In this document: piece after piece, positions 7,296 to 20,355 of the stretch
How the letters are laid out: every line of letters starts with the position of its first letter
Numbering within the stretch: the stretch's first letter is position 1
Origin: Malacoraja senta
Taxonomy: Eukaryota
Direction: 5' to 3'
Assembly: GCA_038087875.1 (NCBI GenBank)
Contig: CM076001.1
Span: 1,674,001 to 1,738,000, forward strand
DNA: 64,000 bases
Program-made: the position numbers and the translations under genes
The notes under the pieces: model-generated
The model's input: the letters and a program-made list of their open reading frames with translations, nothing else
Told to the model about the DNA's origin: nothing
Database searches by the model: none

Positions 7296-7899
7296 TTATG
7301 CAGAGCGGCTATGAAAGTTGAGAAAACTGGCACAAAATGCTGGAGTGACAGTGGGACAGGCAGCATCCCTGGAGAGAAGGAATGGGTTGCGTTTCGGGTC
7401 GATACTCTTCAAGAGAGAGCTAGATATAGCTCTGAGAGCTGACAGAATCAAGGGATATGGGGGAAAAGCAAGAACAGGGTACCAATTCTGCATGAGCAGC
7501 AATCATCATATAGAATGGCGGTCCTGGCTCGAAGGGCCGAATGCATTACTCCTGCGCCTACTTTCTATGTTTCTATGTTTCTATGATTTACAATGATCTG
7601 TTGGGCACCAGCCAATGACTCAGGGCACATCTTTCAGTCCTTTATTCTCTATCTCTCTATATCACCGTCTATGTCTATCATGTCCCTTTCCGCTGACTTA
7701 GTCTGAAAAACGCATTCTGCGAGTAAATTAGGTAATGAATAAGAACTGGGACAAAAACACAAACCGCTGGGGAAACATTGTGGATGAAAGACTGACTGTA
7801 GCGATAGAGGGATAGTCAACGCCTTGTGTCGCTACTCTAGATCCAGGCCCTCTACAGGGAATTTTGAACCCGGTTCTCCCGTTCGTTGCGTTTGTTACC

Positions 7900-9630
7900 T
7901 GTTTCAGAATGGCAGGCAGTGAGGAGTGGAGTGCCGCAAGGCTCGGTGTTGGGGCCGCAACTGTTTACCATATATATTAATGATTTGGAAGAGTGAATTA
8001 GGAGCAGCACTAGCAAGTTTGCGGATGACACAGAAACATAGAAACATAGAAAATAGGTGCAGGAGTAGGCCATTCGGCCCTTCGAGCCTGCACCTACATT
8101 CAATATGATCCTGGCTGATCATCCAACTCAGTATCCTGTACTTGCCTTCTCTCCATACCCCCTGATCCCTTTAGCCACAAGGGCCACATCTAACTCCCTC
8201 TTAAATATAGCCAATGAACTCCCTCTTCTAACTCCCTCTTAAATATAGCCAACTACCTTCTGTGGCAGAGAATTCCACAGATTCACCACTCTCTGTGTGA
8301 AAACTGTTTTTCTCATCTGGGTCCTAACAGACTTCCCCCTTATCCTTAAACTGTGACCACTTGTTCTGGACTTCCCCAACATCGGGAACAATCTTCCTGC
8401 ATCTAGCCTGTCCAACCCCTTAAGAATTTTGTAAGTTTCTATAAGATCCCCCCTCAATCTTCTAAATTCTAGCTAGTACAAGCCGAGTCTATCCAATCTT
8501 TCTTCATATGAAAGTCCTGCCATCCCAGGAACAGTCTGGTGAACCGTCTCTGTACGCCCTCTATGGCAAGAATGTCTTTCTTCAGATTAGGAGACCAAAA
8601 CTGTACACAATATTCCAGGTGCGATCTCACCAAGGCCATGTACAACTGCAGTTGAGCCTCCCTGCTCCTATACTCAAATCATTTTGCTATGAATTTTGCC
8701 ATGACAGAAAGCTGGGTAGCAGTGTGAACTGTGAAGAGGATGTTAGGAGATTGCAGAGTGACCTGGACAGGTTGAGTAAGTGGGCAGATGCGTGGCAGAT
8801 GCAGTATAATATAGATAAATGTGAGGTTATCCACTTTGGCGCCAAAAACAAGGAGGAAGATTATTATCTCAATTGGGTTAGGTTAGGTAAGGGGGAGGTG
8901 CAGCGACACCTGGGTGTCCTTGTACACCAGTCACTGAAAGTTGGCGTGCAGGCACAGCAGGCAGTCAAGAAAGCTAATGGAATGTTGTGCTTCATAACAA
9001 GAGGATTTTAGTATAGGAGTAAAGATGTTCTTCTGCAGTTGTATAGGGCTCTGGTAAGACCACATCTGGAGTATTGTGTACAGTTTTGGTCACCTAATTT
9101 GAGGAACGACATCCTTGTGATTGAGGCAGTGCAGCGTAGGTTCACGAGATTGATCCATGGGATGGCGGGAAGATTGAAAAGATATGAGGGAAGATTGAAA
9201 AGACGAGGCTTGTATTCACTGGAGTTTAGAAGGATAAGTTGGGGGGGTCTTATATAAACATATAACATTATAAAAGGACTGGACAAGCTAGATGCAGGAA
9301 AGAAATTCCCAATGCTGGGCGAGTCCAGAACCAGGGGCCACCGTCTTAGAATAAAGGGGAGGCCATTTAAGACTGTGAGAAAACACCTTTTCACCCTGAG
9401 AGTTGTGAATTTCTGGAATTCCCTGTCACAGACGGCAGTGGAGGCCAAATCACTGGATGGATTTAAGAGAGAGTTAGATAGAGCTCTAGGGCTAGTGGAA
9501 TCAAGGGATATGGGGAGAAGGCAGCCACGGGTTATTGATTGGGGACGATCAGCCATGATCAAAATGAATGGCGGTGCTGGCTCGAATGCCTGAATGGCCT
9601 CCTCCTGCACCAATTTTCTATGTTTCTTTG
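7900..9630. mobile_element. Composite CR1 insertion (plus, minus and plus fragments), approx.
   Basis: CR1 RT peptides on both strands (ORFs 8508-9011, 9039-9257, 8239-8457 minus). Absent at the paralogous site near 59115. Confidence 0.88.
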
Positions 9631-10563
9631 TTTAATAAAATATGAATGAATCGCCTTCACGCATGATATTATGCAGCGCTTTCTTCCCTCTTTTACAAAC
9701 GTGAAAAATAGTTTGTCTGCGGGTTTGGTTTTTAAGTAGCTGTGGTAGCATATCGGTCACGCAGGAGGCAGTTGTTGACGAAGGATCAGCAGACAGGTCT
9801 AATGGGCAACAGTGACAAGCAGCACCTGGAGACTGACACCGGAAACAGAAAGGACAATCGGTGGAGAGTTGGAGTGTTACTTCCGGAGTCCTTTGGAGAC
9901 GCAGATGCCGGAGTCCTGGGCAATTGGAGGAACTATGTGGGCCAGGCAATATCTGTGGAGGGAAATGGGTCAACGACGTTTCGGGTCTGAAACGTTCGTC
10001 AGACTTTGGAGACATCTCTGAAGAAGGCTCCCCACGAGAAACGGATCCTGACCATTCCCCCACAGAAGCCACCTGGCTCGCTGAGTTATTCTGGCAAAGA
10101 TCATAACAACATGCTGGAGTAACTCAGCGCCTGAAGCAACATCTCTGGAGAAAAGGCATAGGTGATGTTTTGGGTCGAGACCCTCGATCGTCTAGCAATT
10201 CATTTGCTCATGCGTCGTTACTAGGTTTGCTCGCTTTTTTCCTTTGGCCTATTTATTTTTTCTCACATTCCTATTGCGCTCTCAATGTATATCTCCCATT
10301 TGTCTCGTCTTTTCTCTTCCATTATGGTCTCCGTTGTTTTTCCGTCCTCATTTGCAATATGATAGTAAAGATTTCTACATGTGTTGCACCTTCTGCATAG
10401 AATACATTTATTTCGTTTCCAAAGGTGTTGCAACAGTATATTCCGCATATCTTTCTCGTTTCACACCACCATTTTCTTTAATGTATGTTTTTGTTGTACT
10501 AGTGCAGGGTGTGATCTGCCCAAATAACACACAAAACAATCAACCAGAACCAATGCCAATTCC

Positions 10564-18194: not shown

Positions 18195-20059
18195 GAACAT
18201 TCTGCCTCACTTTCCAATAGTAGCGCGGAATTGTTTGTCGCATTGGAACCGTGTATATGCTGATAATTTATATTCTCGCCATAACGTTAATGTTTGCTCT
18301 CTCCGTGAATTATGAAAATGCTTGCTGACGATTATAGGAATCAGGTAGTTGTAAGACATCCAGTGTAAAATAAGCAAACTGTGACTTGCGGAGCAAATTC
18401 CCAATGTCACAAAAATACATCGCAATGACACGATCATTAGGACAAAATAACATTGGTTAGATATTGAGCTCGGGTCGACATGAGAATTCCCAACACCCCT
18501 TATTGAAATAGAGATGATGTATTTTTTACTCCAGTCTAATCCTTATATCCTAAAGATAACCACTTTATGGTGCACCGGTTCGTGGTATTTAACGAAATTT
18601 GTCGTCTGAAGAAGGGTTTCGGCCGAAACGTTGCCTATTTCTTCGCTCCATAGATGCTGCCGCACCCGCTGAGTTTATCCAGCACTTTTGTCTAACATAT
18701 GCACTGTAATGTTTTCTTTCTCCGTCGTCCTGTCGGAAAGCAACACATTTGGGCACAGAATTGCGTTATGAATAAGGGGCTTTAAAGATTGCTTTTATTG
18801 ATGTGTAATCAGTCGGAAAAAATAAATGCTTGAACTAAATATATTGTCATTTCCTTCTTATTATAGGACAATTATCGGTGTAAGCTAAATCACCTGCTGT
18901 ACACGACCCATCACCATCCATTCCCTGTATATCCATTTGTCTTTAAAAAAAAAAGCCTCTTCAATGACAGCCAACAATATCTGCGTAAAAATGTGTCCCT
19001 CTCATCTTCAAGATGTGGTCTCTATTCTTTGACATTTTCAACCCTGGGATAAGATTGTATTATTTTATATCTTGCTCATTGCAACATCCATTCCCAGCAC
19101 CCCTCCCCCGAGACCTCACTGCTCTAATTTCCAGTCCAGGCGAGAAAACCGCACTTTCTTCGTTTTTGTGCAAACTGCCAAAGTCTTCCACCGCCTTTTC
19201 TGCAAACGCACCTCCAACGCATTTTTTTCGGCCCATTGCTTGGTTTTCAACAGGTCCTCAGTTAAGAAACCTCTCGTGTTTCACCGTTCATTGAGACAAG
19301 CGGTCTGATAGCCATGAACCCTTTGTCGCAGGTAATCGATGTAATAAAATAATTCGCGTGTGGGCTGTGAGGAAAGATATAATCCGGTGGTAGTACTCGC
19401 TTTCATACCACCTCCTTTGCATGGTTGTTGCTTCAGATTTATGCCTTGTTCCTATTCAATTCATAGTGGAAGAAATTGAACCCTCAACAATTGTTGTCGT
19501 ATTTATTTGCAAAACATTAAAATAATATGAAGGTGGACACAAAATGCTGAACTCAGCGGGACGGGCAGCATCTCAGGAGAGAAGAAATCGGTGACGTTTC
19601 TACCCTCCATTGGAAACGTCACCCAATCCTTTTCTCCAGAGATGCTGCCTGACCCGCGGAGTTCCTCGAGCATTTCGTGTCTACCTTCGATTTAAACCAC
19701 CATCTGCAGTTCTTTCCCACACATTAAAAGAACACGTCTGCCCCCAAAACAAGCGTAGCTAATTGAGCAGAAGAAAATGTTCTACCTGAGAAATCGGAGA
19801 AATCCTAAGTACAAAGTTGAGATTTTATCGAAGATTTTATCGAGAAGGGACGGAGGTTACTGACAGGGAATCGCTTGTATCGCCAATGTCGAGTCGTTCT
19901 TATAAAAGAGCCTTGCCTTGTGACGTGCAATTGGCTCATTTCTTCTCCATGCCGTCGGTGGAGAATCCCAGCGGCGAAAATCTACCTGTTTTGAATAAAG
20001 AGAATAGCGAACGGTGAAACTGAAGTTCTTGGACTGACATCTAGCCACAAGAAAGTTAG

Positions 20060-20355
20060 AGTGTAAGATGTGGTCAACATTTGCTGAACAGGGACTTCCA
20101 CCCCTTTCCGTCTTCCGCAGAGACCTTCCCTCCGCAACACCCTGGTTCACTCATCCCTTCCCAAACAAATCACCCACTCCCCAGGTACCTTCCCCTGCAA
20201 CAGCAGGAGACGCAACATCTGACCCTATACCTCCTCCATCGACAATGTCCAGGGACCCCCACAGTCCTTTCAGGTTAGGCAGCGGTTCACTTGCACTTCC
20301 TCCAACCTCGTCTACTGTATCCGTTGTTCAAGGTGTAAACTCTTATACATCGGCA
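20060..20355 (+). mobile_element. Penelope-like element fragment (start of the GIY-YIG region), approx.
   Basis: Paralogous to 37880-38150. Truncated by the CR1 block that follows. Confidence 0.75.

Follow-up and report, generated by a model that had tools for sequence, protein, structure and literature searches.

A duplicated unit of a T cell receptor-type V segment and an orphan GPCR gene in the skate Malacoraja senta, with halves that appear to have been copied, overwritten, or lost separately

RESULTS

A V segment and a GPCR gene lie together in a repeated unit

The stretch described here is a 64,000-nucleotide window from one skate, Malacoraja senta (GenBank assembly GCA_038087875.1, contig CM076001.1, positions 1,674,001 to 1,738,000), and its sequence suggests that it is part of a T cell receptor (TCR) alpha/delta-type variable (V) segment array with interleaved two-exon class-A orphan G protein-coupled receptor (GPCR) genes. 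Three V segments and five members of one two-exon class-A GPCR family (GPCR-A to GPCR-E) lie in the window. Within it a unit of about 13 kb is repeated, running from a V leader exon through the V exon, a recombination signal sequence (RSS) with a 23-bp spacer, and an intergenic spacer of about 3.4 kb with a fixed pair of long interspersed nuclear element (LINE) fragments into a GPCR half, in which exons 1 and 2 are separated by a 1.3-kb intron and followed by about 2 kb of 3' flank. The copies are called A, B, and C. For comparison we used two stretches, L001 and L002, of Leucoraja erinacea contig JAMYXN010000257.1, whose units are called LeB and LeA. The copies in the window are as follows.

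7408 to 20354, plus strand: copy A of the V and GPCR unit; left part collinear with C, right part with B; orthologue LeA on L002; holds the assembly gap
24976 to 38145, plus strand: copy B, a spacer remnant and the GPCR half only; its left edge adjoins a LINE fragment (24695-24958) common to LeB
58104 to 63754, plus strand: copy C, V half and GPCR exon 1 region; collinear with A; cut off by the end of the window

The copies were compared by self-BLAST of the window, and each base was classed by the number of other places within the window that it matches, which is the sense in which we use low-copy here. The A-C chain (7408-7713/58104-58423, 7712-7900/58926-59119, 9632-11577/59122-61080, 12094-13179/61069-62179, 13180-13874/62252-62989, 14993-15277/62988-63278, and 15883-16181/63456-63752) holds 3096 low-copy columns over 7408-13874 at 93.3% identity and 213 more over 15883-16181 at 80.8%. 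The A-B chain (13815-14009/24976-25169, 14605-14726/25169-25290, 14751-15266/26624-27153, 15270-16910/27404-29028, 16909-19345/29307-31770, and 19447-20354/37278-38145) gives about 3900 low-copy columns at 88-90% identity. This repeated low-copy DNA is both coding and non-coding, collinear, and in the same orientation, as expected of a homology unit.

A preliminary description, made from the letters of the window, had placed unique collinear DNA at 7410-16190 and 58100-63752 and had it run unbroken through V leader, V exon, RSS, spacer, and GPCR exon 1; we recovered it at 7408-16181 and 58104-63754, with all five of these elements on the A-C chain. The 3096 low-copy columns in the self-comparison speak against a likeness of interspersed repeats only, the outcome that the same description had named as fatal to its reading. 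Its third copy, said to keep the GPCR half with no V, corresponds to B, and tblastn upstream of B found no V relic. Read depth in a DNA run stood at about 35-55, the single-copy level, over 12161-12950 and 13547-14050, and at thousands to millions over 12953-13546, where within the window only 13180-13422 looks repeated; thus most, not all, of the DNA classed as low-copy is low-copy genome-wide.

V segments

The features of the three V segments are listed below.

11508 to 11547, plus strand: V-A leader exon (ATG...TTCG followed by gtaagt), from the sequence and from alignment to V-C
12173 to 12475, plus strand: V-A exon; loss of 1 nt from a C-run near 12266, in complementarity-determining region 1 (CDR1), shifts the frame, as aligned to V-C
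12476 to 12514, plus strand: V-A RSS (CACAGTG, 23-bp spacer, ACAAAAAGC)
61011 to 61050, plus strand: V-C leader exon, from the sequence
61148 to 61451, plus strand: V-C exon, intact, V-set (Pfam E = 1.3e-17); closest named relatives TRDV3
61452 to 61490, plus strand: V-C RSS (CACAGTG, 23-bp spacer, ACAAAAAGC)
55530 to 55866, plus strand: V-55k, an intact V of another family (V at about 55530-55828), with RSS CACGGCG, 22-bp spacer, ACAAAAACC; 39% amino acid identity to V-C

V-C has a split leader (leader exon, 97-bp gt..ag intron, V exon), and V-A is built alike, plus a LINE in its intron. The RSSs, identified by reading the sequence after the V exons, stand directly 3' of the V exon in V-A and V-C; the heptamer of V-55k is weaker and its spacer is 22 bp. 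No match to the exact pattern CACAGTG-N-ACAAAAAC was found in the window, and the nonamers that are present differ from it by one base. Pfam V-set is matched by V-C (E as listed) and by V-55k (E = 2.6e-11), with the conserved Cys, Trp, and Y-x-C motif present on scanning. The reading frame across the V exon is open in V-C, V-55k, and the L. erinacea V segments LeA1, LeA2, and LeB. The deletion in V-A is in the reads, since a DNA-run contig spans 12198-12310 with zero differences, from a run that may be the assembly's own sample.

The best named match of V-C is TRDV3 of Latimeria (coelacanth), at 57% identity. Its PDB matches include human TRDV3 chains (7lli, 1tvd), and antibody light-chain V domains score equally well, so the PDB match list alone does not part TCR from immunoglobulin (Ig).

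The GPCR family

The GPCR genes of the window are the following.

15904 to 15973, plus strand: GPCR-A exon 1, reading MHAPGNGPVFAVYYSILATFGVP-, which matches the N termini of annotated homologues
17277 to 18194, plus strand: GPCR-A exon 2, frameshifted by a 1-nt insertion at about 17515 (tblastn splits the frame; alignment to B)
28032 to 28101, plus strand: GPCR-B exon 1, from sequence alignment
29670 to 30586, plus strand: GPCR-B exon 2, intact; 95% amino acid identity to L. erinacea P0001
63477 to 63546, plus strand: GPCR-C exon 1 relic, start codon ATG changed to ACG; the remainder lies beyond the window
49588 to 52032, plus strand: GPCR-D, an older paralogue, intact (exon 1 at 49588, exon 2 to 52032); about 75% nucleotide identity in exon 2; no V in cassette position
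1156 to 4628, minus strand: GPCR-E, an older paralogue (exon 1 4628-4559, exon 2 ends at 1156); orthologue of L. erinacea P0014

A 70-nt exon 1 and exon 2 together make up the coding sequence, and both the N termini (MHAPGNGP...) and the splice position are those of annotated elasmobranch proteins called "probable GPR139". Best protein matches of the window's GPCRs come from L. erinacea, at about 95% identity, and Pfam 7tm_1 (PF00001) is matched above the gathering score by B, D, and E (E = 1e-14). Orthology with GPR139 was considered and rejected: human GPR139 (PDB 7vug), although the best PDB match, reaches only E = 3e-5 and 27 bits, with OR52 at 8e-5. What these proteins share with it is the rhodopsin-class seven-transmembrane (7TM) likeness from which the automatic annotation drew the name, and the skate genes are only remote cousins of GPR139. 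An olfactory receptor identity (7tm_4) was likewise rejected, as the Pfam match is to 7tm_1 only and the coding sequence lies in two exons rather than one.

A search for the family gave 1295 matches at E <= 0.001, and names from sharks, skates, and rays account for nearly all of the best 120 of these 1295; the family thus named appears to be large and specific to cartilaginous fish. A full-text literature search with two terms (GPR139, shark) returned no paper describing it.

The ratio of nonsynonymous to synonymous substitution rates (dN/dS) against the L. erinacea orthologues is 0.14 for B-LeB and 0.15 for E-LeE, so that GPCR-B and GPCR-E are under purifying selection and are taken to be functional genes. 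Between A and B it is 0.48, which suggests relaxed constraint on the GPCR-A branch. Three of the GPCRs (B, D, and E) have no V in cassette position. The region upstream of GPCR-E (4537-6007, minus strand) and that upstream of GPCR-D (48958-49679, plus strand) are 74-82% alike and inverted, which would make E and D an older inverted paralogue pair with no V partners.

LINE insertions, the assembly gap, and other repeats

LINE fragments make up about a quarter of the window. The preliminary description had named four insertions as specific to single copies. Three of them (a block at 7900-9630, an element in the V-A intron, and a stack at 31907-37280) are real, since the other copies and the L. 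erinacea units are contiguous where they stand. The block, at 7902-9633 in A, is missing from C (59119/59122) and from LeB, with contiguous flanks, and the stack, at 31903-37277, is specific to B and missing from A and LeB. Our "CR1-like" label draws on an RVT_1 match and a CR1-like 8-bp tail only, and the family names CR1 and L2 are otherwise unconfirmed. The third insertion is listed here with the landmark pair and the gap.

11578 to 12093, plus strand: 3' fragment of a CR1-like LINE, specific to A, within the leader intron of V-A and ending, as such LINEs do, in a (TTCTATGT)n tail; C, LeA, and LeB are contiguous here
14704 to 15413, strand unspecified: LINE-fragment pair (X and a reversed CR1-like 3' end), with the same junction in B (26624-27541) and C (62988-63458)
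14060 to 14495, strand unspecified: assembly gap in the intergenic spacer of A (V-A RSS to GPCR-A exon 1); its flanks are adjacent in other copies

At the junction of X and CR1, the CR1 copies of A, B, and C cluster together with support 0.93. The gap is the only N run in the window. Positions 14009 and 14605 of A are adjacent in B (25169) and in LeB (L001 7650), and 13874 and 14993 are adjacent in C (62989/62988), so order and orientation across the gap agree with three other copies; about 160 bp beside it have no counterpart in B or C. As the gap is intergenic, no reading frame is at stake in it, and the open reading frames listed over it are runs of X. The argument for the unit is independent of copy A, since C and both L. 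erinacea units are gap-free.

Several further repeats and matches were observed. A sequence of about 290 bp recurs at 2965-3262, 11068-11356, 50560-50870, and 60557-60837 with about 68-70% identity; two of these copies are intronic, in GPCR-E and GPCR-D, and two precede the leader exons of V-A and V-C. An Rfam search of the window found no family, and the sequence is probably a short interspersed nuclear element (SINE)-like element. Long pyrimidine-rich low-complexity tracts coincide with the left edge of unit A (6651-7442) and with the place of the missing V half of B (23403-24650). Upstream of unit C, 56293-56469 matches L001:781-937, upstream of LeB, over 180 bp at 79%; this match is unique within the window and could be a genome-wide repeat or the trace of an older common flank. 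The LINE-rich stretch between B and D carries tandemly repeated DNA (42232-42582; period about 41 bp, self-identity 86-87%). The last part of the window, 63755-64000 in the GPCR-C intron, where the preliminary description had placed an L2 as its fourth insertion, has no match elsewhere in the window.

Orthologous units in Leucoraja erinacea

Both L. erinacea units consist of a V, a homologous spacer, and a GPCR, in the same order and orientation.

L001, V 5895 to 6194, GPCR exon 1 at 10001, exon 2 11441 to 12372: LeB unit, orthologue of B
L002, two V segments at 5674 to 5967 and 7887 to 8180, GPCR exon 1 1668 to 1597: LeA unit, orthologue of A; adjoins the orthologue of E, as in the window

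In the tree of exon 2, (A,(B,LeB)) is recovered with support 97 and (E,LeE) with 100, the tree of the GPCR half separates {A,LeA} from the rest with support 93, and B and LeB have the same LINE fragment adjoining the same spacer position. A and LeA, and B and LeB, are thus taken as orthologues, and this pairing makes the duplication that separated A from B older than the split of the two species. LeA and LeB are both complete, in support of a segmental duplication of the whole V and GPCR unit before that split, which gave the A/LeA and B/LeB lineages, and they show that the V half of B was lost afterwards. The loss lies at a LINE-fragment junction, where homology stops at 24976. Orthologous non-coding identity is about 90-91%, both in the two halves of A-LeA and in the flanks of E.

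Within exon 2, synonymous divergence (dS) between A and B (17277-18194 and 29670-30586) is 0.098, lower than the 0.166 found between the orthologues B and LeB, a difference suggestive of a further exchange, this one between A and B, in this skate species.

L. erinacea also holds a tandem duplication of the V alone (L002:5526-9951, unit of about 2.2 kb), the products of which, LeA1 and LeA2, are 97.3% alike and both open; some of the coding differences between them cluster in CDR1 (EYDDPG and EYANPD). Movement of V-only copies by a RAG/RSS-mediated route was rejected, as the LeA1/LeA2 boundary lies about 110 bp past the RSS and the A-C tract is bounded by LINE fragments. The L. erinacea annotation contains no GPCR-D orthologue, which could have anchored an orthologue of C; the best match of GPCR-D is in Amblyraja radiata, at 78%.

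The A-C pair is a mosaic

Along the A-C pair the degree of identity changes. In the block of the V exon, A and C are 95.7% identical, A and LeA 90.9%, and LeB stands at 88%, and in the V half A and C are each about 89-91% identical to LeA. In the block of GPCR exon 1, by contrast, the closest pairs are A-LeA (90.9%) and A-B (90.0%), with A-C and B-C at about 80%. Identity falls significantly from 93.3% in the V half to 80.8% around exon 1 (Fisher p = 6e-9), and informative sites in the exon 1 region (42 for AB, 12 for AC, and 11 for BC) give the topology (A,B),C. As A and C are 93-96% identical in a V half for which orthologues reach about 91%, the V half would have been copied after the species split. 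The collinearity of A and C does not, on these comparisons, appear to stem from a single duplication event.

The switch in identity lies within or beside the LINE-fragment pair whose junction recurs in all three copies, and at either end the young tract reaches a CR1-like copy (7408-7588/57863-58296 and 14993-15413/62988-63458), the tract holding about 3.7 kb of DNA outside transposable elements (TEs). The idea that the V lost from B became the V of C was rejected, since V-half identity to LeB is 88.2% for C and 88.7% for A.

The tree of the V half contains {A,C}, {LeA1,LeA2}, and LeB, and in setting A/LeA apart from LeB it does not conflict with the GPCR tree. The preliminary description had proposed comparing V and GPCR trees as a check and had named incongruence as an outcome that would refute it; the two trees are congruent for A/LeA and LeB and incongruent for the A-C pair only. 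Its view of V and GPCR as one duplicated cassette accordingly holds for the duplication of whole units, of which LeA and LeB are complete examples, and does not hold for the A-C pair, where identity drops and topology switches.

DISCUSSION

How the units may have arisen and come apart

The explanation that we consider likely as a whole is a segmental duplication of the unit followed by separate exchange, loss, and V-only copying of its halves. From the sequence comparisons, the halves appear to have been copied, overwritten, or lost separately. After the species split, a homology-driven exchange, either ectopic gene conversion or unequal recombination, would have transferred a copy of the V half of A to C, and the GPCR part of C would be an old, decayed paralogue left in place. 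LINEs inserted into single copies one by one, and V-A, GPCR-A, and GPCR-C gained their disabling changes. V and GPCR copy numbers would be linked solely through the common duplication unit, in a leaky form of collateral, or hitch-hiking, expansion. The preliminary description had gone further and called the two expansions mechanically coupled; physical linkage in a segmentally duplicated unit stands, and anything more than linkage does not, given the V-only pair LeA1/LeA2 and the V-less B, D, and E. Its expectation that either half can decay is borne out by a B with no V, by frameshifts in V-A and GPCR-A, and by the ATG-to-ACG change in GPCR-C.

A history in which A, B, and C each came from duplication of a complete unit, with only point decay and TE insertion and no exchange thereafter, would account for collinearity that spans V, spacer, and GPCR exon 1, for the LINE landmarks common to all three copies, and for the completeness of both L. 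erinacea units. It is nevertheless improbable, as it is contradicted for the A-C pair by the fall in identity along one unit, by the switch of nearest relative from (A,C) to (A,B), and by a V half in which A and C are more alike than the orthologues A and LeA. Another history would have C begin as a GPCR-only copy like B and gain the V half of A de novo after speciation, through recombination between flanking CR1-like repeats. CR1-like copies do lie at both edges of the young tract, L. erinacea has a V-only duplication, and GPCR-only units exist (B, D, and E); yet the V half would have had to land in the order, orientation, and relative position that it has in A and LeB, and the spacer of C at 62932-62989, left of the junction of X and CR1, matches A and B, which fits an older full unit. 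We regard this history as unlikely. An artefact (interspersed repeats only, a scaffolding error at the gap, or haplotypes that were collapsed or duplicated) might be suspected from the share of LINE fragments in the window, from the gap in copy A, and from the high genome-wide repetition of 12953-13546. We find it barely credible against the 3096 aligned columns that are low-copy within the window, a depth of about 35-55 at 12161-12950 and 13547-14050 where true repeats reach thousands, the gap-free C and L. erinacea units, and copies that, unlike haplotypes, differ by 5-20% and carry private TE insertions.

Some points weigh against the explanation that we prefer, of unit duplication with later exchange. 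In intron 1, B is nearer to A (90%) than to LeB (86%), so that further exchange between A and B is needed. The GPCR comparison of C covers about 300 bp only, since the window ends at 64000; the tree of the V half has no outgroup, and the direction from A to C follows from a clock-like reading of distances. Before the exchange C may have been with or without a V. Of the L. erinacea contig, which is unplaced, 45 kb out of 173 kb were covered. For the locus itself, V homology (TRDV3 matches) and RSS type are the only grounds of the TCR alpha/delta label, and no D, J, or C gene lies within the 64-kb window.

Comparison with other species and known systems

V segments also neighbor these GPCR genes in other batoids. 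In A. radiata, two TRAV-like V exons with RSSs and two GPCRs lie within 23 kb, and in Pristis pectinata a V-set exon (L004:2568-2783) with a canonical RSS (CACAGTG, 23 bp, ACAAAAACT) stands 7 kb 5' of a GPR139-like gene. The framework of the P. pectinata V (WYKQAPGKSPEWLL...GRITFTTESS) looks nearer to Ig heavy-chain V than to TRAV. In the shark loci covered, from Stegostoma and Heptranchias (L005-L007), no V lies within 10 kb of the GPCRs, so the interleaving of V and GPCR was seen in batoids only.

Tandem arrays are subject to concerted evolution, in which patchwise homogenization leaves the paralogues of one species closer to each other than orthologues are. The V half of A and C, and possibly exon 2 of A and B, resemble such a case. 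The skate tract differs from the general pattern in being long (about 3.7 kb outside TEs) and LINE-bounded and in covering one of the unit's two genes.

Duplication of multi-gene homology units is an established route of V-array expansion, and it brings collateral passengers, incomplete replicas, and subsequent decay (PMC4289303). The skate locus resembles these bovine units in that multi-gene blocks of a V array are replicated, passengers expand unselected, some copies are partial, and indels and pseudogenes follow. In the bovine units, however, the passengers are other TRAV/TRDV subgroups, whereas the skate partner is a non-immune GPCR under purifying selection, and either gene could be the passenger. 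In the mammalian TRA/TRD locus, olfactory receptor genes lie among the 5' TRAV segments (OR10G2 and OR4E2 in human; Olfr1507-1509 in mouse) (PMC4574546), so that there, too, class-A GPCR genes stand between TCR alpha/delta V segments. Those genes are few, with conserved synteny at the edge of the locus, and PMC4574546 does not describe their co-amplification with V; the skate genes, in contrast, match 7tm_1 only, have two exons, and are co-duplicated with V.

The unit is real, then, its mechanism is an ordinary one of a known kind of duplication, and the coupling of V and GPCR is a physical linkage that is often broken. That selection on the GPCRs, and not on the V segments, drives amplification of the unit is a speculative proposal to which we give little weight; it draws on a dN/dS of about 0.14 in intact GPCRs and on a dead V-A. 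If it were true, part of the batoid TCR V repertoire would be a side effect of expansion in a non-immune receptor family housed by the V array, and deletional V(D)J joining would remove different sets of GPCRs in different T-cell clones.

The A-C pair carries a caution, in that collinearity alone is not proof of a single duplication event. Together with its L. erinacea counterpart, the locus offers a worked cross-species example of the growth of a V array, in which a whole block appears to have been duplicated before its parts were exchanged, lost, or duplicated individually. The skate block carries a non-immune receptor gene that is still under selection, and its history bears on the expansion of a large elasmobranch receptor family.

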